Shown piece by piece: positions 25,757-63,412 of a stretch of DNA of 64,000 nt. The notes under the pieces are model-generated. The model was not told where the DNA came from and did not search any database. It saw only the letters and a list, made by a program, of their open reading frames with translations. The DNA is taken from NCBI RefSeq assembly GCF_022045235.1, contig NW_027266275.1, positions 58,094,001 to 58,158,000 of the forward strand, in the 5' to 3' direction. Numbering within the stretch: position 1 is the stretch's first letter; every line of letters begins with the position of its first letter. This DNA comes from Haliotis cracherodii (lineage: Eukaryota). The position numbers were made by a program, and so were the translations under genes.

Positions 25757-25887
25757 CATTATAATAATTGAACTGTAATCAATGTGTATAACAGACATAG
25801 CTTTTGCCAAGAATCACATTTTCATCATTATTATCAAATCATATGAATGCCAGCCTATCTATAGACCATGACCTTTGACCTATGCAT

Positions 25888-26096
25888 CCCCTTATGAGAT
25901 CCGGGGTAGAATAGGTCTTCAGCAACCAATGCTTGCCGTAAAATGTGACTGCTTGTCATAAGAGGCGACAAATGGGATCGGGTGGTCAGGCTTGCTGACT
26001 TGGTTAGTGCATGTAATTGTATCCCCGTTGCGTGAATTGATGCTCATGATGTCAATCACTGGATTGTCTGACCCACACTAGATTATTTATCGACCA
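25888..26096 (+). mobile_element. Retroposon family D (no tRNA head, structured 5' end), copy with duplicated last hairpin
   Basis: Shares segments with 27921, 29506, 41648 and 43918. Confidence 0.75.
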
Positions 26097-26154
26097 TGTC
26101 TACTTTTGTCTACCATGTTTACTGGTACCATATATTTATATATATAATGGCCAA

Positions 26155-27685: not shown

Positions 27686-28075
<390 letters not shown>

Positions 28076-29505: not shown

Positions 29506-29678
29506 CCCGTGGGGATTCGGGGGTCAAACTAGGAAACTTTTAATATCGTGTCATCATAACACAAAGTCATGATGGTTGTGCTTAATGTCAGTCAATCACT
29601 GGATTGTCTGGTACAGACAGTATTATTTACAAGACCCTCATATAACTAATCTTGCTGAGTGTGGTGTTCAACAACAAG
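29506..29678 (+). mobile_element. Retroposon family D, degenerate copy
   Basis: CCCGTGGGGATTCGGGGGT start; ATCACTGGATTGTCTGG body; TTGCTGAGTGTGGTGTTCAACAACAA tail. Confidence 0.6.
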
Positions 29679-40080: not shown

Positions 40081-40444
40081 GTTCCAGGACAATCTGTTGA
40101 CTATTGTGCCTTTCTGCTTTATTGGAAATACATGTATGTCCAACATGATGATATTCACAACATTTGCCAAAACCTTGCAATGAACAATCACAAAGGGAAG
40201 ACAGTTGCTTTCTGATAAAACAAACTTCACGTTTGTATCCTGACTTTTGGGAAGACACAGTATGTTACATGTGAACACCTAACCTTAGTAGGCTGATAAT
40301 TCTGTAACCAGTTTGCTTCTCTAGCCCTTTGTCTGTAGCACTAGTCTGAAAATGGATTCAGTTGAATGAACTCACCGGATACGTCGCAGGCCCTTGGCAC
40401 AGACTGTGTTAAAGACGTATCAGGGTTTAACTATAGTTACAATA

Positions 40445-40446
<2 letters not shown>

Positions 40447-40508
<62 letters not shown>
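40447..40508. repeat. (AT)n microsatellite
   Basis: About 30 units. Confidence 0.97.
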
Positions 40509-40510
<2 letters not shown>

Positions 40511-41647
40511 TGATCATGCGAGATTACAGTGTGTGAATTACCTCAGTAATACATTATTTTGAATACAGTTGCTGTGTAAGGGATAGGAAGGCAGAAGGAT
40601 TTATGTTGTTTCCTAGTCACGCCAATCTCATAAAAATCAGCATCATTTTGTGCTCCCTACTGCTACACAAAGATCTGAGGACATCCCATTACAGGGCGCA
40701 CCGATCTGACCAGTCAGAATGCCACTTACATGGTCGCAAAAGTGAATGGCTGATTGTGTTTTCTAATCATGCAACCTTTGAAAGGTCAACACGAGGCATA
40801 CCCAACCACAGTAAAATAAACATTTGAAATGGATCAGACTTTCCATAGCCCTTGGGTAGTACTGCCATACAATCTCAGTATTTTCTTTGTTCAGTTTTCA
40901 AATTTTGAATCAATAAGTTTGTCAAAGAAATTTCAAAATGTAGTCGTGAATGGAAGTTACTATTTTTAAACTAGTGCCATAAAGCCTCAGAAAGCTGTTT
41001 TCTGATTGGCAAATGTCAACTTCCTGTTGGTCATTTCACTGGTCGGTCAAAGTTCTGAAAAATGTTGTCCTGTCGTGACCTACAATCTGATGTCCTCCGA
41101 TCTTTGTGTACCCACAGCGAGCACTAACACCTGATTTTAATGAGATTGTAGTGACACAGGTTCTCAGGCGTCTCTCTAGGACCTCCCAGAATGACACTGT
41201 TTTATTGCTACAGCACGTAAGAACTGAGGGGCACATTTTGTCACACCCAAAGACAGGTGTATCACTTGTCCTCGCCAAAGAACCCATTACTTGTCACTTT
41301 CAGCCTCACCAAGTTTATAGTGAAAGTTGGAGAATCAATTTGAGATGGCAATACATGTACATATGTATTTAATGCAAATCAGATTATTTTGCAAAGGCCA
41401 CTCATTCTTTAAGTTACACAGCCATATTAAAATATGTTATACCACAAAAAGTAAATATGTTCTTTCTTTTATCTCAAATAGCCTCTGAAATTGAAACTCT
41501 GCAAGGGTTCACTTCAGTGCTATTCAATTCACAATCCTTGTTATTATGAGACCTTTTACTCCCATATGATTCCTCTATGCTTGGAAGATCGGAGAACACC
41601 TCCAGAGAAGGTCATGTCTGCTGAATCCTGAGCTATGTTTGACAGCC

Positions 41648-41693
41648 TGCTTGTCGTAAGAGGCGACTAACCGGATCGGGTGGTCAGGCTCAC
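41648..41693 (+). mobile_element. Retroposon family D fragment (best-preserved last hairpin)
   Basis: TGCTTGTCGTAAGAGGCGACTAACCGGATCGGGTGGTCAGGCTC. Confidence 0.7.
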
Positions 41694-43917
41694 TTCCTGC
41701 CTGCCTGCACTATGTTTTCAGAGCCCATTGCCTGAGGACCAATTCTTCTAAAAAAAATTAAAGCCTGGCTTGACTAGAATTTGTCTGAATGCTTTGCTCA
41801 CTTATATTGAGAATTTAGAAGCCCAAGTGATTATATGCTGATGAAAGTGTTCACCTGACGAGATCTTTATGCAGAGAGGCATCATACTGGAGTAAATGAT
41901 CTGATTTTGATGAGATTGTTCAGTTCAGTGTGTTAATGGAAAAGGGAACACTGTCCACAAATCCCTAAAGTTTATTTGTCCCAAATTTTCTTTTGAAATT
42001 TCTTTTAATAGATTCTGTTGTTGATATATAGACACGAACAAGGCATATAGTTCTATGGATATATAACTTCTTTATTACGATGACTGTGGCGTTTAATATT
42101 TTCATTTGTTTTTTCTGCTGCTCTTGCCAGTTTGTGCTTTGATTTGGTTTTGAAATTCTTGTCTCATTTTCTTCAGTATTGAGATAGGATTGGGTACAAT
42201 GCTCAAACACAATTCCTGTGTCTATCTCACAATTCCTGTATATTTCTCATGGAATGCCGTACCATTCTTCTCAGTTTTGTTTGGAATTATGTTCTCCTTA
42301 TATTGTGCAGCAAGGGGGAACACATGGAAGAAGCATGCTGTATTCATATCCCTTCTGTGTTTTCTTATCAAACATATCTAAGAACAGTATTGATACATAG
42401 GTATATGTACACAGTTATATTATTGGATATTGGCTATATTTTAACTTAATCACCTGTAATTTGAGAGCAAACATGTGTACAGCTGATTGCTATTTCCAGT
42501 TTAGTTTAGAAGACAAATAGTTTAAATACACATGTAATTGTATCCCTGCATATGAAACATTGCCTAGCCTAACAAGAAATAAAATGGAAATGGTATGTCA
42601 TTGTGTTTAGTGATGTTCAATAGCACATTTCACATTTTCATTGACAAAGTTTATCTCTTGTTTGTTCACCTGGAGTGACACAATGTTATTTTTTAATTAT
42701 AGAAAAATAGTTTCATGAAAGTCTAACCTTTATATAGGCCAACCCCCTTCAATGGAATCTTTTTCTGGTCCTCAAAATCCAGGTCATCTACTGTCATATA
42801 CAGTAGTAAGGATGTGTTTTGTTGTCAGAACAAGGGGCATTGGTTATAGTAGGGGGTGTCAAGAATCAGCCGGATCCTTATCCCGCATAGGAAGAAAATG
42901 TTCAAGGATTAATCTAGACCTGCTCAGAGGCCGATAATTGGCCCAAAGTTAGCACAAATTTTCATTAAATATTCCCAAATGCGAATACAACGTTTTCCTG
43001 TTTCATGTAAATATAGTTATAACTTGTGGCTTGGCCGAGGTGAATTCCACTGATTGCAAGCCCAGGAAAAAGGAAGTGGGTTGGTTAGTTTTACATTATT
43101 ATATTGAATGCAATGTTAAAATATCTCTGAAAATAATTTAAAATAGTAATATTTATTCCCAGTATGTCTGCCAAAGGCACTTAGTCCCTGATGTTTGTCT
43201 AAATTCTGAAATTCCATGGCGCCTCATTCAGATTGTACTGTGGTATACATTTTGCTGTGGACGTTTCTTTAAAATAGTAGACATAAAAAATTATTTAATC
43301 ACTGTATTTTATTGTGTATACTCCACATGATATTGAGAATATGATATTGCTCCAGGTGAGAGCAGGTGATTACAGAAGTGGTCAAAGCGTAATTTATAAC
43401 TTACACTTTGTAATAAAAGTGCTAGACACTGTTGTTGAAAACATAAATTGTGTTTAACCTCACATATTTTTCTATGATCAATATCATCAAGTTTGATTTT
43501 CTCCTGAACTAACCTAGGAGGTAGCAGTCAACTTGAAGTGTGATTTTGTCTTGCGATCCAGTGATTCAGTTTGATGTTATACCCACAATCATAACATCAG
43601 TGCTATCATAGCAAGAAAGTTAGTCTGAAATTATTATTGTACCAATAATAAAATAGCCATCAATAAAATAGTGAAATATAAATACATTTTTAATGTAGTC
43701 CTTATGTTTGCCACTGGTAGTTTTTGTGTGTGAAAATATTTTATGAGTCCTAGTTTGAGATTGTGATCAATGAAAACAAAAAGTTAACAGCCTTAATCCA
43801 TAGAAAGCAAATTAATGACTGTCAATAGTCAAATAGCAACAACTATGACCTGTTGAAAATCAAATCATGACATGCAGATATATTTTTAATTCTCTGAAAA
43901 CTCAGATCTGTAACTCG

Positions 43918-44080
43918 ATGACTTGGTTGATGCATGTCATCGTATCCCAATTGCGTGGATCAATGCTCATGATGTCGATCACAGTATTGTCTGGTCCAGA
44001 CTCGATTATTTACAGACCACAGTCTTATAGCTGGAATATTGCTGAGTGCGGCGTTAAACAACAAACAAACAAACAAACAA
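43918..44080 (+). mobile_element. Retroposon family D, 5'-truncated copy with intact tail
   Basis: Body matches 25997-26095; ends GCTGAGTGCGGCGTTAAACAAC(AAAC)n. Confidence 0.8.
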
Positions 44081-47045
44081 AGTCAGATCTGGAATAGGAC
44101 CATGCTTGTTGTATGTAACAGTGAGTTGCTGCAATCTGTTGATTAGGCCGCGTACGATTAGCCAAAATTGATGTACTAAAATTGAATGAAATTTTGAATG
44201 AAATTATATCCAAAACTTAAAGCCAGAAATACCCTAAATAGTGCAATAAGAATGATGACTGGCCTAATTCATTACATATTTGTTAACATGGTTATTCTGG
44301 TGTTAACATGCTCACTTGGGATTGGGGGGTGGAGGGGCATTGTCTCAGTTTGCATGTATGATATGCACACTCCTCCATACAGGTAAATGTTCTGGGAAAG
44401 TGTGGGTATTAAACACAAGAACTTTAGTACAGCTATTGTTTCACTGTCAGACCAACAAACTTTCATACTGGCGCATTCTTACATTTGTTGCATTGATAAC
44501 AGAGGAGCCCATCCCTCTCCTAGTACACATTATCCCACCAAGAGAGGTGACTATGTAGCTTCAGGATATCAGATAGGATCATATTGCAGAAAGTGTGGCC
44601 TCTCCCGAGGCTTTCTTCCATATGAGTTTTTACCCTATTTTCTAGCTGAAACATATTTGAAGCTTGCTGTTCATCTTTACAAGTTAGGTTATTAAAGTAG
44701 ATAGAAAATCTGGGATCTGTTCTACACTGTGTGTAAAATAAACTGCAGAGATAATTTTTATCAGTGTACTGTATTGCAACCCAAAATATGGAAATATAGT
44801 TTATCATGAATAGGGAAATAGGCGAATATGTTACCTTTTGTGTGAATGTACTTGATACATTGAAACGAGACTTCAATATACAACTTGCTGGAAGCACATT
44901 GTTTCCTGTTACTCAATGGCATTTCTCGATGTTCTGGTTCTGTTGTAGACGTCATGTCAGTGTCATGTCCATTGCTCTGTCATCGATGGTTGCTGTACAG
45001 TGGTGCACTGGATATATTTGCATGCAGTTTATATATTATTTTGTATATTTCGTTGCATTCAGTCTCAACTTTAAACATTTGAATTCATATGTTGTGTCAA
45101 AAAGCATTTTATCAAATGATCCAAGTTGAAATAGCCAGCAAAAATGCTTGCTTCTTTGAAAGAAGTATGCACCGGCAATTGTTTTTGACAAACGTTCTTT
45201 TTGTACTGAAGCTTAAATGATAGTAATAATAAGAGTATATTCATATTATTCTAAATTTCATGTAGTTTATTAATTTTTAAAACTTGTCTTGTTTCAACTT
45301 TCTTAAGATGTACGGTAGAATAGGCCAATATTGTTGTGGTTGTCATCAAAGTTGATTTGCAAACACCTATCATTGAAATCCATGTATAAATATTTGATGG
45401 AGGCATAGATCACTTATGCAGACTGTAATAGCACAAACCCACAGCCTTACTGGAACAAGTTCATCTGGTGATAGAGTTTTCATCCAAACTTTACTTTGTG
45501 TTTCTAAATGATGTCCATATATTGAATATTGTATTATATTGCTTCAAATGATCATCTTTAGGTTAGGGTATGTTTTATCCAAAGCTGGCTAGGTTGTTGA
45601 TATGGAAGGGAAATTTGTGAATGTATGATATCCTATAGGTGTGTGTGATTTTCCTAACAGTTAATGCTTTGTTTAGCCTTTGTTGTCATTGCAAAGGGAA
45701 AGTGGAATCGTCTGCAAACCAATCCTGTAGGGTTAGATTAGATTAGCTTCATAATACTACCACCCAAATAATGCTAGGATCAGGTGTCATAGGTGCCATC
45801 TGTTCAAGGATGTCGTGCCTATTGCAGTCCATGCTTGTTTGACTCAAGTAATTCACTTCCACTTTGTTTGTCCCCTATCTATACTCGGCAGCATTATTGA
45901 GGGGGCACAACAGAGATATAAATCTGAAAAAGACGTCACATTTTCAATTTGCCAGACTGCACTTCAGTTGCATCGTAAATGAAACACTGTCACTTGTCAT
46001 GTATGCCGCATGCATGGGCTATAGCACTGGTGTGAATTTTGGGTAGCTTTTTCCATCACCCTCAATATCACACATTTCAATGTTTTTAATCGTCGGCGTC
46101 CATTTTTCCAGTTTCATAAAAGTATCCAATCAGTGTGACAGGCATAAACACGTTTTTCACTTGTTAATGACATTGTTAACATACTCCGATCTGTTGATGC
46201 TTGTCTTCATATTGTCATCCTACATACCTAGGTGACCCTTCAATAATGCTGTTGAGTACATTATATTTTATGTGTATCATTCTAGAAGATAATGATTGCC
46301 CTAATTTACCCAGAGGCAGTGTCTCAGTTTCACAGTTTCACTGATTACAACATCTGGACCGAGGATTGAAATGACACACTAGATTGTGGAGCATTAGCCC
46401 CTTCAAAGGGTTGGCTTAGTACAGTATACATAGGTGATGCTGAAAGAGCGACAGGACACGTCATTCATGACATGCAATCTTGGTCGTGAAGAATCACAAT
46501 TTGAATACAGTTGGAATAAGTTTTGAGGTATGATGCTTTACCACGTAGCTGCACCAGGATATGATGGCTGTGGTTTCTGCAGAGGCTAGTTAGTAGCCTT
46601 TCTCAAGACGGTGCAATATAGTAACATGTTATAGAGATCTCATCAGACGTCTTGTACAGCTTTTGTTGATAAAGTTAATCTCCGGGAATTCTGTTGGTTG
46701 TGTTTCCACTTGTTTTTCACTATTTTAAGATGTAGAAAATGTACAGTCACTGTGTAGATTAGCTTTTACTTATCACCATTGTACATATTGCATCGCCATC
46801 ACAAGTCATGTGTATAGGAATTGTTTGTATAAGAGTTGTCTCCATTGATATGAATGAATTATCACCTGTTTTGGGTATTGTTAAGCATAACTGTTCCCAT
46901 CTTGGCCACCAGAAATAAGTACCAACTTTTAGTCTTCTTGCTTTTAAAAACAACATTGATTAGGAGGGACATTATTTCCATAAGAAAATGAATAATTCAT
47001 GTGATTTTAATTTTGGTGCACCAATATTCAAAGTTGTATCACATA

Positions 47046-55685: not shown

Positions 55686-56274
55686 TCTTAACGATACTGA
55701 TAAGAACCATATTTATATGTCTATGACATTTGAGGAATTTGAAAAAAGGAAAATTGACTGCCTGCTCCTCATGTATTTCCCAAGTTCCAAAAGTACCAAG
55801 AATGGATTGTTTGTGGGTTGTGTTTTTTCTTCTTTCATAGGATGGTCAACTTTCAAATCACAAAATGATAAACCAAATCGATATATATATTTTTACCATC
55901 CACTTTGCTGCCAACAATACAACACATTCCAATATATGCGCAATATCATCAAACACAGAATTGGGAAATTCATGTTCTTAAGTCACCAATAAGCAGGCTG
56001 TTGAATGTGTTAGGTACTGTAGTTTACTATTGTGGACGTCTTGTCTCCTTCTTGCTATTTAAACATGTCTTCTTGATGTTTCAGAATGGAGGATAAGGCA
56101 GACCTTGATCTGAGAACTAATCCTGGCCATGAGTTTCTCTACATCAATGTTGGTAGTTTTGATACTTACCTTTGATACTTCCTGTGATGACGCCACGACT
56201 GGTGACTGACCGGATCAAGACATTAGTGTAGAATGGTTGTGTGATTGCAGTTGACCTTAGAGGTTGTAATAACA

Positions 56275-56947
56275 TTGAGGGGATGCTACTGGCTGACCTG
56301 AAGCTGACCTGATGTTGTAGATCACAGGTGGAAACTTAGGCCCTGATGACATTGTTGTGATGATGCCATCACTGAGGGGATGCTACTGGCTGACCTGAAG
56401 CTGACCTGATGTTGTAGATCACAGGTGGAAACTAAGGCCCTGATGACATTGTTGTGATGATGCCATCACTGAGGGGATGCTACTGGCTGACCTGAAGCTG
56501 ACCTGATGTTGTAGATCACAGGTGGAAACTAAGGCCCTGATGACATTGTTGTGATGATGCCATCACTGAGGGGATGCTACTGGCTGACCTGAAGCTGACC
56601 TGATGTTGTAGATCACAGGTGGAAACTTAGGCCCTGATGACATTGTTGTGATGATGCCATCATTGAGGGGATGCTACTGGCTGACCTGAAGCTGACCTGA
56701 TGTTGTAGATTACAGGTGGAAACTTAGGCCCTGATGACATTGTTGTGATGATGCCATCACTGAGGGGATGCTACTGGCTGACCTGAAGCTGACCTGATGT
56801 TGTAGATTACAGGTGGAAACTTAGGCCCTGATGACATTGTTGTGATGATGCCATCACTGAGGGGATGCTACTGGCTGACCTGAAGCTGACCTGATTACAG
56901 GTGAAAACTTAAGCCTTAAACTTGTTGTGGTGAAGCCATCATTGAGG
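56275..56947. repeat. 97-bp tandem repeat, 6 near-identical units plus a degenerate 7th
   Basis: GAGGGGATGCT recurs at 56277, 56374, 56471, 56568, 56665, 56762, 56859. Confidence 0.95.
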
Positions 56948-57471
56948 TCTAATCTGAATGGATGATTCAGACACTTATCTGTGACAAGAGTTACGTACGA
57001 TCAGCAGCAACCTGCCACAATATCACCCGTATCCTTCAGGTCCAGTTGTTGTTAGGAGCGATGCGTCATCCACCATTGGAAACCAGACAGAGGACTAGAT
57101 TTTCAATTATATCTCGCATCATCAACCTCATCATCAAGCTTTGGTGGTGTATCGAGTGATAAACATTGTCAGTTTTTGTTCCAATATCCCTTGGTTATCA
57201 TGGTCCTCAAGCTTCGCTGATGATCCATGTATCCATCGACGATACTTCACAAGCATTGTCAACACTTCATGAGTTTGTGTACCCTCCCATCACCAGTGAA
57301 TACATATGTCCGCCATGCGGTGTAAAGTGACTTGTGACTTGTTTTAGTAAGCTAATGAAATGAGGCCTTTTTAAGCTCAAGGTAGGTCATGAACCCTTCC
57401 ATGTGCATAAACTTAATGTGAAACCTTCAACTGTCTGCAACAAAGGCATTGCATGAAGTTACAAGGTCATG

Positions 57472-58023
57472 AGGTTGTCAAGGGAGACACATTGCTGTCC
57501 GTGGGATGTAAGCAGGACACTCATTGGTTGCACAGGTTGTCAAGGGAGACACATTGTTGTTTGTGGGATGTAAGCTGGGCACTCATCGGTTTCACAGGTT
57601 GTCAAGGGAGAAACATTGCTGTTCATGGGATGTAAGCAGGACACTCATTGGTTGCAGAGGTTGTCAAGGGAGAAACATTGCTGTTTGTGGGATGTAAGCT
57701 GGGCACTCATCGGTTTCACAGGTTGTCAAGGGAGAAACATTGCTGTTCGTGGGATGTAAGCTGGGCACTCATTGGTTGCACAGGTTGTCTAGGGAGACTC
57801 ATTGCTGTCCGTGGGATGTAAGCAGGACACTCATTGGTTGCACAGGTTGTCAAGGGAGAAACATTGCTTTCCGTGTGATGTAAGCTGGGCACTCATTGGT
57901 TGCACAGGTTGTCAAGGGAGAAACATTGCTGTCCGTGGGATGTAAGCAGGACACTCATTGGTTGCACAGGTTGTCAAGGGAGAAACATTGCTGTTCGTGG
58001 GATGTTAGCAGGACACTCATTGG
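57472..58023. repeat. 62-bp tandem repeat, about 9 units
   Basis: GGTTGTCAAGGGAGA every 62 bp from 57473. Confidence 0.95.
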
Positions 58024-60150
58024 ACTAAGGACTTGCTGCTCAGTAAAACCTGGCCTTTGCTTGATTCATTGGTTAAAAATAGGCAAAGCAGTTGATGTAT
58101 TCACGGGTGAAGGAGGAATGTTGTGCTTACAGTACCTCACATTAAGATTATCCTGATGCAGGATCTCCATTCTCTTGTTGGTGTTAGCAACATATTTCAG
58201 CAGGACATGTTTTTTACAAATGATGCTTCTCTGACCTCAAAATCTCAATGAGATCAAATTCGGGAAAATGTATTTGAAGATAGCAGGAGACATATATGTG
58301 GTTTCTAAAGAAGGAACATGTATCATTAACATAATGAGTTTGGCGACATATTTCCTCCTCAAGTTGTATAATGTGGTAAATAAGAGAAGAAGCCTGTGAT
58401 AGACAGTATGTATTAAGTCAGCCTGCAAAGTGAACACTTCCAGAAACAAGATGGCCAGTAATGGTTCAAGGGAGATAACCCACTAATCTGGAGAAAGTGG
58501 CTACAAACTCTTCAAGGAGACTCACACTCATCCGTGAAAACCAGCTGGCCACCTTTTTCATCAGTCTCATTGTGTACTGTTGCACTGACGCCTTGCACTG
58601 TCATGACCTGTCAAAAATGTGAGTGTGCAGCCGACGAACGGCAAGTCTTCCCCAGCTCTGATTGCTTTGATAATGTAGTAGTGATTCTTCAGCGTATCAA
58701 ACTACAGAGGGATGTAAGATGTGCAATGTAGCAGGTCTTTTGTTCAAATGTTTTTTTAAAGTCACAGCCAATCTTAAGATGTGTTTTATGCTATAGTTTT
58801 AATGTAAATATGATAAATGTTTTATATAATGGTCCCATATAATGGTCATATTGATATATGAGTGGGTTGAGTTGTGACCACTGCATTTGTTATTTTTCCT
58901 ATGGCTTTTGCAGCTTGAACCTGCCTACAATATATACAGCTGATTTAATGTGTACTGGACCTTGTTTCATGTCATGTCATTGTATGTGATAGCTCAGTTA
59001 TTCCGTCGATCAATGCTGTGATCAGAGTTACCTCCCTTCCTCTGCCAGCTTGAATGCTTGCTTGTGTGTGCAACAACAATAATGTATTGAAATCAGAGAG
59101 CCTCGATACAGAATAGTGCATAACGTGAATGTCCAAAGGAAACCTTTCTTAAAAGATGTATACTGTAGATAAATAATGGCATTCAGAGAACACGGGGTGA
59201 ATTTGTAATGCAAATGTGTATAGAAATATAGCAAATGCAGAACTGAACATTATGCAAATGTATTTATGGTGACGATAGATGAGATTTGTGTCAAAACTAA
59301 AATGTTACAAATCTATTAATCAAATATTATATTACAAATATGTGCATGTGCATGTGTGAAATATTATGCTGTATTTTCAAAATGAAGTGGAGGTTTAAAT
59401 CTTCCATTGAATGATGCCAAAGTTACAAGGCTACCATGGCAACAAGATTTTCTTTGATCTGGAAATCTGGACTACAAGGGCAAGAATAGCTATGTGGGGA
59501 GAAGTATTTGATAGGTATGCGATGAAAGGTTGAAGAAATCATTGATTACTGTTTCCGAGGTATAAGCTGAATGTACTCCTTGATTACACCCACTCTGTAT
59601 GATGTAGTTAGCAGCTGGGCCTCCACACTGATTTGTAGACCTCTCCCTTTCCTGCACTGACTTCGTTATGGTAGGGACAAAAAGAAATATTTGTTTCCTA
59701 CTTCGGCTTTTGCAAAATAGGGCAGGAAGGTATTTTTATTTTATATTTTATTGCTTTATTATTGTATTGAAAAAAAAATTGCAGTCTTTGCAGAACACAT
59801 CATTTTGTGGACTTGGGTAAACAGTCAGGAAACTGGAAACACATTTTGAGGGGGCGGACTAGGATAAAAACAAAATTACAGATATTTGTTTTCTGCACAT
59901 TTTGGTGTAGGCTCATCTAAACAATAAAAATGTTTTGTCCAAAATAATCAGTTACAGAAAGCTAAGTGGTCACAAGTGTAAACACATTTGTTTTTTTAGT
60001 TTTTCTATTTTTCTAAATTTCAGTTTGGCTTGTCTGTAAAACAAGAAGCAGCCCTGGCCTTATGTGTTCTACAAAGATAAAGGTGCCTGGAGTTCTATTC
60101 AGGTGCACTGAAACCAGGGTTTGCTTCTACTGGGAACCAACCTTTTAATA

Positions 60151-60519: not shown

Positions 60520-61369
60520 TAATCATTTTTATGGTATGGGTATTTTTATGTCACTCCTTCAAGGGGTACAGTTTTGTTGCTCTGGGAGGAGCTCAAGACT
60601 CTTTTGGGGAACCACAACTTGTTTTAATACAAGACAACAAGCCTGTCCGATGAACAATTTGGCTTGGGTGGGGTTGTTGGGGGATGAATCCTCCCAAAAA
60701 ATTCAAAACAATCCTGGGCCACCGCCAAAATATAAAATGGTTGGTCCCTCTTAGATCCAGTATTGGCTGCAAATGGGTATTAGCTCAATTACACTAGCTC
60801 TATTGCTTGTGTGCTTTGTTACCTCATCAATATTGTACACAACAGTATTCTGTTCGTATTCTATCTAGCCTGGATGGCATGGAATATTAGTATATTTATC
60901 AATGTATTCATATAGACAACTAGAGGCAAAAGAATGTCTCTGGTCATATTTCATATCTTTTTTAAGAAACTTCATTCACTAGCTAGTCTTTGGTAGATTT
61001 GTAATCAAATAACTTAGATAGAATGTATAAACAAGGACCTTTTTAAATGTTTATAAGTTTTATCAGTCTTATATTTAATTTTAGTTGAAAGGAATTGTTC
61101 ATAGTACAATATTGATTGAAAGAGCAGACTTTGAACAAAAGAAGACTAGATATAGTCATATGTACTGTGTTGTGTGATGTTACAGAACAATTCACAAAGA
61201 AGAGGAAGCTTCCTTTGTCATAAGGGCTGAAAGAAATGGTGTGCCATGGTACTTGTCTTTACAAACTGACTTTCTTCCTTCTTAATTACAGGTACCACCA
61301 TCTTCATATTTAACAAATATTACCATTCACCATGGTCACAAATACATTTGTCATCATTTAACAATCAGA

Positions 61370-63412
61370 CCATCACATGTAGACTTCATCCTTCACACAT
61401 CGACTTCATCCTCCACAGGTAGACTTCATCCTTTACACATAGACTTCATCATTCACACGTAGACTTTATCCTTCACACGTAGACTTCATTCTTCACACAT
61501 AGACTTCATCCTTCACACATAGACTTCATCCTTCACATGTAGACTTTATCCTTCACATAGACTTCATCCTCCACATGTTGACTTCATCCTCCACATGTAG
61601 ACTTCATCCTTCACACGTAGACTTCATCATTCACACGTAGACTTTATCCTTCACATGTAGACTTTATCCTCCACATGTTGACTTCATCCTTCACACGTAG
61701 ACTTCATCCTTCACACGTTGACTTCATCCTTCACATGTAGACTTCATCCTTCACACATAGACTTTATCCTTCACATGTAGACTTTATCCTTCACATGTAG
61801 ACTTTATCCTTCACATTTAGACTTCATCCTTCACATGTAGACTTCATCCTCCACACAAACTTCATTCTTCACATGTAGACTTCATCCTCCACACAAACTT
61901 CATCATTCACATGTAGACTTCGTCATTCACACATAGACTTCATCATTCACACGTAGACTTTATCCTTCACACGTAGACTTCATTCTTCACACATAGACTT
62001 CATCCTTCACACGTAGACTTCATTCTTCACACGTAGACTTTATCCTTCACACATAGACTTCATTCTTCACACGTAGACTTCATCCTTCACATGTAGACTT
62101 CATCCTTCACACATAGACTTCATCCTTCACATGTAGACTTCATCCTTCACATGTAGACTTCATCCTTCACACATAGACTTCATCCTTCACACGTAGACTT
62201 CATCCTTTATCCTTCACACATAGACCCTATCCTTCACACGTAGACTTCATCCTTTATCCTTCACACCTAGACTTCATCCTTCACACCTAGACTTCATCCT
62301 TCACACGTAGACTTCATCCTTCACACGTAGACTTCACCTTTCACAGGTAGACTTCATTCTTCACACGTAGACTTCATCCTTCACACGTAGACTTCATCAT
62401 TCACGCGTAGACTTCATCATTCACACGTAGACTTCATCCTTCACACAGACTTCATTCTTCACACGTAGACTTCATCCTTCACATGTAGACTTCATCATTA
62501 ACACGTAGACTTCATCCTTCACATGTAGACTTTATCCTTCACATGTAGACTTTATCCTTCACATGTAGACTTTATCCTTCACATTTAGACTTCATCCTTC
62601 ACATGTAGACTTCATCCTCCACACAAACTTCATTCTTCACATGTAGACTTCATCCTCCACACAAACTTCATCATTCACATGTAGACTTCGTCATTCACAC
62701 ATAGACTTCATCATTCACACGTAGACTTTATCCTTCACACGTAGACTTCATTCTTCACACATAGACTTCATCCTTCACACGTAGACTTCATTCTTCACAC
62801 GTAGACTTTATCCTTCACACATAGACTTCATTCTTCACACGTAGACTTCATCCTTCACACGTTGACTTCATCCTTCACATGTAGACTTCATCCTTCACAC
62901 ATAGACTTCATCCTTCACATGTAGACTTCATCCTTCACATGTAGACTTCATCCTTCACACATAGACTTCATCCTTCACACGTAGACTTCATCCTTTATCC
63001 TTCACACGTAGACCCTATCCTTCACACGTAGACTTCATCCTTTATCCTTCACACATAGACTTCATCCTTCACACCTAGACTTCATCCTTCACACGTAGAC
63101 TTCATCCTTCACACGTAGACTTCACCTTTCACAGGTAGACTTCATTCTTCACACGTAGACTTCATCCTTCACACGTAGACTTCATCATTCACGCGTAGAC
63201 TTCATCATTCACACGTAGACTTCATCCTTCACACAGACTTCATTCTTCACACGTAGACTTCATCCTTCACATGTAGACTTCATCATTAACACGTAGACTT
63301 CATCCTTCACATGTAGACTTCATCATTCACACGTAGACTTCATCCTTCACACATAGACTTCATCCTTCACACGTAGACTTCATCCTTCACATGTAGACTT
63401 CATCCTTCACAT
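61370..63412. repeat. 20-bp minisatellite (GTAGACTTCATCCTTCACAC)n, about 100 units
   Basis: Direct inspection; variant units recur in blocks. Confidence 0.97.

Follow-up and report, generated by a model that had tools for sequence, protein, structure and literature searches.

What stands at the 5′ end of a retroposon that carries no tRNA head? The question is raised by a copy of a short retroposon at positions 25888–26110 (+) of a 64,000-nt stretch of the genome of the abalone Haliotis cracherodii, referred to here as the window. A first, sequence-only reading of the window had assigned five places to one retroposon family (family D) and had drawn its first 70–90 nt as a closing stem, three hairpins, and a kissing loop. 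The head was proposed there to be an undescribed self-cleaving or 5′-defining RNA. We examined the family in the genome, the relationship of its head to published elements, the occurrence of the head in other sequences, and the pairings that are kept among independent lineages.

Family D in the window and the genome

The copy at 25888–26110 (nhmmer match 25896–26095) belongs to a family with more than 3381 candidate matches in the 1.18-Gb genome (80 contigs), far more than chance would give, and the 40 genome matches that were scored are 87–89% identical to it. Twenty 10-kb pieces of the genome, picked arbitrarily (200 kb in total), contain 34 heads by model R1, from which a family size of order 10^5 can be extrapolated. 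In its profile the element measures ~310 bp, with a LINE-type tail and (CAAA)n at its 3′ end. Its 5′ border is sharp. A comparison of 30 copies showed that similarity sets in abruptly with G-ACCCGTGAAGATCC and that the sequences 5′ of it are mutually unrelated. Target-site duplications of 8–13 bp surround most full copies and end one base before ACCCG, and the majority of copies are full length. A 22-nt tandem unit in the head is present in one to three copies among the members of the family.

The LINE-type tail is common to family D and the tRNA SINEs of the window (families D5, D7, and D10), as the sequence-only reading had stated, and its observation that the family lacks Pol III A/B boxes was likewise borne out. 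No tRNA head was found upstream of the 5′ end of family D, where the flanks are unrelated, and the A and B boxes that mark the Pol III head of a tRNA SINE are absent from the head. An Rfam search at E ≤ 10 with the heads in the window and with intact copies matched no family, tRNA included, while the tRNA model did match the adjoining tRNA SINEs in the same search. In two cases an antisense tRNA SINE lies just upstream of the head; these are separate insertions and not part of the head. The copies in the window and the parts of the first copy, labeled by the helices described below, are as follows.

25888–26110, + strand: family D copy; 5′ end present and diverged, 3′-truncated before the tail (nhmmer 25896–26095, model positions 9–210)
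25886–25985, + strand: head module, of the subfamily with an extra degenerate 22-nt unit (R1 35.1 bits, E = 7.8e-9, full model length)
25888–25891, + strand: 5′ strand of S1, CCCC (CCCG in intact copies); its partner at 25902–25906 has cross-lineage support
25896–25901, + strand: 5′ strand of S2, GAGATC, the first hairpin of the earlier drawing (sequence; covariation)
25902–25906, + strand: 3′ strand of S1, CGGGG, earlier taken as the start of loop 1
25907–25913, + strand: A-rich loop L3, TAGAATA, retained by the abalone consensus and by every other lineage (AGAATA was required by the search pattern)
25914–25920, + strand: 3′ strand of S2, GGTCTTC (sequence; covariation)
25921–25933, + strand: hairpin H2, AGCA, loop ACCAA, TGCT (sequence; covariation); the loop is ACCCA in intact copies and pairs with GGG(T) 3′ of hairpin 3
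25935–25949, + strand: degenerate duplicate of hairpin 3, part of the 22-nt tandem unit (family comparison)
25955–25969, + strand: hairpin 3, GTCATAAGAGGCGAC (consensus GTCGTAAGAGGCGAC, invariant in all lineages found)
25974–25983, + strand: candidate 3′ strands of pseudoknot 2, either GGG at 25974–25976 or GGGT at 25980–25983; the register in abalone is ambiguous
27920–27999, + strand: head-only copy of a second abalone variant, S2 AGGGATT/GGTCCCA (R1 32.1 bits, E = 8e-8; nhmmer 27931–27989); the head alone matches elsewhere in the genome
29512–29679, + strand: 5′-truncated fragment of body and tail (nhmmer model positions 89–258)
41629–41734, + strand: partial copy starting near hairpin 3, which is intact and followed by TAA (R1 26.4 bits; nhmmer 41647–41734)
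43914–44081, + strand: 5′-truncated copy with body, LINE-type tail, and (CAAA)n end (nhmmer 43914–44070, model positions 106–262)

All five places assigned to the family in the first reading thus belong to it and lie on the + strand, but nhmmer places the head only in the copies at 25888 and 27921. The copy at 41648 does have an intact hairpin 3 followed by TAA, as described, but it starts there and holds no complete head, and those at 29506 and 43918 are of the same family but are body and tail fragments without a head. The five copies are all in the sense orientation of the gene (5/5), as had been pointed out, but the sample is too small to carry weight.

Relationship to published LP-SINEs

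LP-SINEs have been described in Haliotis, Littorina, oysters, and scallops, with a fruit fly also mentioned; they have target-site duplications, a short-repeat tail, and no tRNA, 5S, or 7SL head (Matetovici, 2016, PMC4758252). Their first ~70 bp are homologous to the extreme 5′ ends of LINEs, of which two are of the Nimb clade (locust and zebrafish) and one is an RTE (turtle), and several combinations of head and body coexist within one genome; the named relatives of the head are Nimb-17_LMi, I-3_DR, RTE-9_CPB, and Hdi_LP/Hmi_LP (PMC4758252). A similar motif at arthropod LINE 5′ ends, which the first reading had mentioned, agrees with this published head at Nimb and RTE LINEs, locust included (PMC4758252).

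Family D is likewise short and non-autonomous, with target-site duplications that vary and a tandem repeat as its 3′ tail, and its head shows no derivation from tRNA, 5S, or 7SL in Rfam at E ≤ 10. Because it shares with the LP-SINEs a host at the genus level, the architecture, and a module of ~70–80 nt, family D is probably an LP-type SINE, as judged by comparison with the description of the published family. The hexamers AATATA/ACTAAA that precede the tail repeats of the Haliotis/Ostrea elements (PMC4758252) were not seen in family D. The element type was therefore already published in 2016, and the new part appears to be the RNA fold of its head. In the LP-SINE paper the head was suggested as a possible DNA promoter, an activity that the authors themselves call untested, with the trypanosome Pr77 promoter/ribozyme drawn as a parallel, and neither an RNA structure nor a link to viruses was reported (PMC4758252).

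Independent lineages that carry the head module

The abalone copies were first evaluated by themselves. Shuffled sequence folds at least as stably as the 134-nt head (z = +0.59), and the folding energy of the whole element gave z = −1.94. RNAalifold on family D copies returned only a weak long-range stem. Covariation within family D was not found when 49 copies were scored on the structure of the earlier drawing, with 89.9% of the positions paired versus 89.5% in shuffled alignments. Such a result is expected because the copies decay neutrally after insertion; it therefore neither supports nor refutes a structure, and independent lineages are needed.

The IMG/VR database was scanned with the exact string of hairpin 3, and 31 loci were obtained. 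Chance matches inside unrelated sequence, mostly in longer contigs, account for 26 of these. In the remaining five contigs the string lies 30–86 nt from a contig end. CCGUG, a 7-bp stem whose loop ends in AGAAUA, and a small hairpin precede it there, and UAA follows. The five contigs represent four distinct (+)ssRNA viruses of tombus/noda-like and tetra-like types. One virus encodes RdRP_3 and a nodavirus-type capsid, another an RdRP_3 polymerase, a third (two contigs) the tetravirus capsid Peptidase_A21, and another an S-domain coat protein and a large ORF. The closest named relative of one of the carrier polymerases is “Tombus-like virus” (73% identity). The viral module is located in the 3′ UTR, in the sense of the ORFs and 9–414 nt after the last stop codon, and one virus has two modules in tandem. 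None of 79 contigs from relatives of one carrier virus has the module, which indicates that the viral distribution is patchy.

Model R1, whose training included viral sequences, gave scores of 60–85 bits for true modules and 17 bits for loci with the 15-mer alone. A covariance model built from retroposon sequences only (R3), whose training alignment was laid out by R1, found all the viral modules at full length with 41.6–62.4 bits and E values from 1e-10 to 1.5e-17. None of the ~70 other loci obtained with the same short-motif patterns reached E ≤ 0.001 with R3.

A metagenome scan with a pattern of the loop plus hairpin 3 gave at least 120 loci, and most of them, among the matches listed, are from a few host-associated sample series. 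In these host-associated metagenomes the module forms the head of at least three further retroposon families. Conservation begins 0–2 nt before S1 (CCCG) in abalone and in three metagenome families, and the first base is a purine in all four retroposon families. The tail of one metagenome family is much like the abalone tails and has (ACTC)n. A C2H2 zinc-finger gene on one module-bearing metagenome contig indicates that the DNA is from an animal host. The open frames adjoining the metagenome modules showed no reverse-transcriptase domain.

Local helices and their covariation

The head module is ~80 nt long and comprises five helices, S1, S2, H2, hairpin 3, and PK2, with the strands in the order S1a, S2a, S1b, S2b, H2, hairpin 3, and PK2b. 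S2 is a helix of 7 bp, H2 is a hairpin of 4 bp, and hairpin 3 reads GUCGU-AAGAG-GCGAC and is followed by UAA. The three local helices S2, H2, and hairpin 3 were evaluated in a plain MAFFT alignment of 14 lineage representatives, in which 95.1% of their positions are paired versus 72.5% in shuffled alignments. The covariation score is 0.654 versus 0.193 for shuffled alignments, and none of 500 shuffles reached it. When the partners were slid by 1–3 columns in the same alignment, pairing fell to 32–51%.

Nine pairs change on both sides, six of the seven in S2 and three of the four in H2. S2 reads GAAGAUC/GGUCUUC in abalone, and GUGAUGG/CCAUCAC, GUAGCAC/GUGCUAC, and GGAUUGG/CCAGUCU in three viruses. 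The second abalone variant, GGGGAUU/GGUCCCC, has two compensatory pairs in S2. The compensatory change noticed by eye in the copy at 27921 is real and belongs to this variant. The first two hairpins of the earlier drawing also hold: GAGATC/GGTCTT is present, extends to 7 bp in intact copies, and covaries across lineages, and AGCA/TGCT is present and covaries as well (0/500 shuffles, scored with the first hairpin). Hairpin 3 is likewise present, and in the window copy at 25888 it carries a G-to-A change at 25958.

Hairpin 3 never varies and thus contributes no evidence from covariation. All the non-abalone lineages were found via patterns that required hairpin 3 and AGAAUA, and the invariance of both is therefore partly built in. 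A scan in which the three inner pairs of hairpin 3 were left free found no viral copies with a varied hairpin 3.

Long-range pairings form two pseudoknots

C-rich strands occur twice in the module, as the 5′ CCCG and as the H2 loop, and so do G-rich strands, as the CGGG that opens “loop 1” and as the stretch 3′ of hairpin 3. The sequence-only reading had paired them crosswise, the 5′ CCC with the downstream GGG as a closing stem and the ACC of the H2 loop with the GGU of loop 1 as a kissing loop. The other lineages do not keep these pairings. In S1, the CCCG at nt 3–6 pairs with the CGGG directly 3′ of the 5′ strand of S2, and this helix combines with S2 into an H-type pseudoknot whose first loop is 1 nt long and whose third loop, UAGAAUA, is A-rich and conserved. 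The sequence of S1 is flipped among lineages, namely CGCCC/GGGCG and GCCG/CGGC in two viruses (L079 and L089, respectively) and GGCCC/GGGCC in one metagenome family.

In the second pseudoknot (PK2), the loop of H2 pairs with the stretch after hairpin 3 and its UAA. The strand pairs observed are CCUGG/CCAGG, CCAGG/CCUGG, CCUGA/UCAGG, CCCAU/AUGGG, UCCAU/AUGGA, and AUCU/AGAU. At the center of the helix, 22 sequences have A-U and 14 have U-A, and none has a broken pair; the alignment used for this count had not been adjusted to PK2. In two of the four viruses the second pseudoknot could not be discerned.

With both pseudoknots added, 89.9% of the positions are paired in 38 sequences versus 75.7% in shuffled alignments (0/500 shuffles). 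Of 13 lineages scored with G-U pairs allowed, 10 favored the scheme with S1 and PK2 over the closing stem and kissing loop, two favored the latter, and one gave a tie. The crosswise scheme is thus outscored in 10 of 13 lineages and is contradicted by the swap between A-U and U-A in PK2; possibly it represents an alternative conformer. S1 was judged by a custom script because the alignments placed it in two registers. In a second covariance model, made for S1 and PK2, four pairs were lost to insertion columns and the register of S1 was not fixed. Taken together, we consider it very probable that the head folds as this double pseudoknot and that the fold is distributed across retroposons and viruses. 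In this respect the first reading is supported in its essence: retroposons that look promoterless carry at their very 5′ end a conserved RNA of several helices, some of them formed by long-range pairing.

Function of the module

Several retroposon families have the module as their precise 5′ terminus, and unrelated viruses have it in the 3′ UTR; for this reason we conclude that it acts as an RNA, probably with conserved host machinery. Viruses without a DNA stage keep the helices as well as the unpaired motifs, and the retroposons show compensatory changes. These observations point to a function at the RNA level, for which a promoter alone is insufficient. The polymerases and capsids of the carriers are unrelated, so that the partner is probably host machinery.

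Our tentative reading, which we hold as a possibility to work with, is that the module stalls 5′-to-3′ exonucleases of the Xrn1 type and in this way may protect or define the 5′ end of the RNA. The pseudoknot of S1 and S2 would sequester the first nucleotides, and Xrn1-type enzymes proceeding 5′ to 3′ would stall at it. Whether the retroposon RNA is made from its own start site or carved from host transcripts, its 5′ end would thereby stay fixed and protected, and in viruses the same fold would protect or generate a 3′-terminal RNA. We favor an exonuclease block because the retroposon RNA begins exactly at the pseudoknot and because the SINEs keep the module without a need for translation. In support of it, the 5′-terminal nucleotides are paired in a GC-rich stem and an A-rich loop crosses this stem, an arrangement known from compact pseudoknots that withstand 5′-to-3′ machines. 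RNAs that resist exonucleases are well established in viral 3′ UTRs, frequently as tandem copies. Against it, no xrRNA family of Rfam matches the module (abalone or viral copies, E ≤ 10). The purine at the first base also fits a transcription start, which counts against an exonuclease block as well. In small-RNA reads from three libraries, probably of a related species, 9–114 reads mapped to a near-consensus copy and showed no pile-up of 5′-phosphate ends at the start of the element, a number too small to weigh for or against. A literature search on xrRNAs or exonuclease resistance in retroposons, and on the motif strings, found nothing relevant. The exonuclease reading can be widened. The module might represent a new class of RNA directed at host machinery, most attractively an exonuclease-stalling one, which fixes 5′ ends without a promoter, allows LINEs and SINEs to be carved from any host transcript, and has passed horizontally between retroposons of invertebrates and unrelated RNA viruses. 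We regard this wider proposal as rather doubtful.

It is unlikely, in our estimate, that the module instead recruits the translation machinery (ribosomal subunits or initiation factors) in the manner of the 3′ cap-independent enhancers of tombus-like viruses. At the 5′ end of a LINE it would substitute for a cap, and SINEs would keep it to sit at the ribosomes that make the LINE reverse transcriptase. Two of the carrier viruses have a tombus-type polymerase (RdRP_3), which favors this idea, as does the known use of enhancers by the group: tombus-like viruses commonly use structured 3′ enhancers, which remain functional when moved to the 5′ end. Ribosome-binding elements with multiple hairpins and a double pseudoknot exist, as in the tRNA-shaped structure of TCV, and provide a precedent, and the invariant hairpin 3 suggests a specific binding partner. 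However, no translation-enhancer family of Rfam matches the module, and SINEs contain nothing to translate. The 79 relatives of one carrier that lack the module indicate that it is not core to the expression strategy of that group, and, to present knowledge, the RNAs of tetra-like and noda-like viruses carry a cap.

The suggestion that the head is mainly an internal promoter at the DNA level, derived from a LINE 5′ UTR, was based on the position of the head and its homology to LINE 5′ ends (Matetovici, 2016, PMC4758252). On such a view the RNA fold would be secondary or would serve the viruses alone. A purine start at a fixed site agrees with it, and so does the full length of most copies, as would be expected of elements with their own promoter. 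It does not account for the retention of helices and unpaired motifs by RNA viruses, which have no DNA stage, and the compensatory changes in S2, H2, and PK2 among the retroposons would not be expected if selection acted on a DNA motif. We therefore consider a promoter role of this kind quite improbable; a combined role as promoter and RNA is a live rival.

The module could also be a site for proteins of retroposon or host RNPs, such as a LINE ORF1-type protein or an abundant RNA chaperone, captured by viruses for the same partner. Hairpin 3 with its UAA is invariant in sequence, and not merely in pairing, in every lineage found, and no new case appeared when its inner pairs were allowed to vary; the patchy and horizontally spread distribution is also like that of s2m. 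This invariance is, however, partly conditioned by the search patterns, and a protein site leaves the exact 5′-terminal position in retroposons unexplained. We know of no protein partner of the module, and we assign the protein-site explanation only a slight chance.

Self-cleavage, the activity first proposed for the head, would cut the RNA at its own 5′ edge and free the element from host transcripts. The sharp 5′ end and the complex pseudoknotted fold suit a ribozyme, and the HDV-like ribozymes at the 5′ ends of R2, RTE, and L1Tc provide a precedent. The fold is indeed unlike the known ribozymes, as had been remarked: no ribozyme family of Rfam matches it at E ≤ 10 (for hammerhead, twister, twister-sister, pistol, and hatchet, in abalone and viral copies), and the order of its strands is not the HDV-like nesting. 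A further difficulty is the location within the 3′ UTR of linear viral genomes, once in tandem, where constitutive cleavage would remove the end used for replication. Because viral 3′ ends would be severed, no ribozyme matches, and the helix order differs from that of HDV-like ribozymes, an efficient self-cleaver is very improbable. We give almost no credence to a degenerate tRNA or tRNA-like head, be it the remnant of a Pol III head or a substrate for RNase P cleavage at the 5′ edge: the earlier four-stem drawing was cloverleaf-like by eye, with GG and UAGA in the first loop as in a D loop, but the Rfam tRNA model misses every head yet matches the neighboring tRNA SINEs, the A/B boxes are absent, the pairings kept across lineages are pseudoknots and not a cloverleaf, and RNase P cleavage would also sever viral 3′ UTRs.

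Comparison with known structured RNAs

The stem-loop II-like motif (s2m) of corona-, astro-, calici-, and picornaviruses, which has also been reported in insect genomes, resembles the module in being a short conserved structured RNA with a patchy and apparently horizontal distribution in the 3′ UTRs of unrelated (+)ssRNA viruses. It differs in being a single irregular hairpin of unrelated sequence and fold and in not being known as the 5′ terminus of a retroposon. The s2m model of Rfam matched neither the abalone nor the viral modules.

The xrRNAs of flaviviruses, dianthoviruses, and poleroviruses are, like the module, compact pseudoknots in viral 3′ UTRs and often occur in tandem. They are 45–80 nt long, and their 5′ end is locked in the fold, which defines the 5′ end of the RNA that survives decay. 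The pairing of the 5′ end of the module in S1, as predicted from sequence, would fit a locking of this type. The order of the helices in flavivirus and dianthovirus xrRNAs differs from that of the module, and to our knowledge no xrRNA is present at the head of a retroposon.

HDV-like ribozymes and Pr77 (R2, RTE, L1Tc, and ingi) are, like the module, conserved and structured RNAs located precisely at the 5′ terminus of non-LTR elements. They are shared among unrelated elements, including the non-autonomous NARTc and RIME, and are thought to release the element from co-transcripts. Their nested order of P1, P1.1, P2, P3, and P4 is absent from the module.

The frameshift pseudoknots of the luteovirus type have, like S1 and S2, a GC-rich stem of 4–6 bp, a 1-nt loop, and a second stem of ~7 bp. 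Both also have an A-rich third loop, which by analogy may lie in the minor groove of stem 1. The luteovirus-type pseudoknots lie in coding overlaps and act on ribosomes, whereas the module is 5′-terminal or in the 3′ UTR and contains three more helices.

The role of the ~70-nt 5′ end of LP-SINEs and the polymerase that transcribes them were left as questions when these elements were described (PMC4758252). LINEs from different clades and SINEs from several phyla have this 5′ end in common. With a covarying double-pseudoknot RNA that viruses keep as well, what has to be explained is an RNA device rather than a DNA promoter. The module joins s2m as a second structured RNA common to unrelated viruses and animal genomes, and its genomic role is clear here, as it heads elements that make up several percent of the genome. 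If it truly defines 5′ ends, it would represent a third route by which retroposons obtain a 5′ end, beside internal promoters and ribozymes.

Variation of the head module in the abalone genome

The number of 22-nt units carrying hairpin 3 in the head module of family D differs among members of this LP-type SINE family, and one, two or three tandem copies were observed (L044:6381-6459 and other fetched copies). The most abundant subfamily among the fetched loci has two units, and the ancestral form of the family looks to have had a single one. A head-like sequence also occurs in tandem on its own, on the minus strand of contig C78 of the abalone assembly (L050:9101-9620), where at least eight units of 51 nt each follow one another. 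Each unit is a head-like piece with S1, S2, the A-rich loop and an H2-like part, lacks hairpin 3, and belongs to the head variant with the S2 strands GGGGATT/GGTCCCC. This array looks like a satellite with its origin in the head's pseudoknot half.

At its right end, the window has three separate tandem-repeat arrays with no relation to the head module, and a pure dinucleotide tract lies further to the left:

56176-57048, tandem-repeat array with a period of 97 nt
57348-58147, tandem-repeat array with a period of 62 nt
61223-63000, tandem-repeat array with a period of 20 nt
40440-40517, pure (AT)n tract

The microRNA matches returned by a permissive Rfam scan at 40440-40517 were rejected as spurious, being caused by the (AT)n tract.

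Variation of the module in metagenome families and a virus

In two metagenome families (L153, L194, L234 and related loci), the third loop of the pseudoknot has insertions of approximately 60–130 nt, which are located between the CGGG strand and AGAAUA with the flanking helices retained; one of them includes a (GTAA)n repeat. One viral 3' UTR has a tandem pair of modules (L073:1-153, minus strand of the contig), the second of which is incomplete and ended by the contig edge. In the 7-bp stem, an A-U pair of one module is replaced by G-C in the other, a compensatory change.

Small RNAs, nested insertions and mosaic families

Antisense small-RNA reads of ~31 nt map to the SINE body at an abalone locus (L008:1664-1694). 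They form a pile in which every read starts at position 1694, and two runs yielded 63 and 9 such molecules; the libraries carry the code of another organism, probably a related species. The pile looks like a piRNA directed against the SINE body.

At another abalone locus (L014:1252-1500), a family D copy has an antisense tRNA SINE inserted exactly at its 5' end. The 10-bp target duplication of this tRNA SINE takes in the first 9 nt of the family D copy, and there is an older head fragment immediately upstream. At L033:1407-1600, also in the abalone genome, the family D head is combined with a short body of another kind and with a tail resembling that of the tRNA SINEs. Therefore, the abalone genome has several LP-type families, among which heads and tails are shared mosaically.
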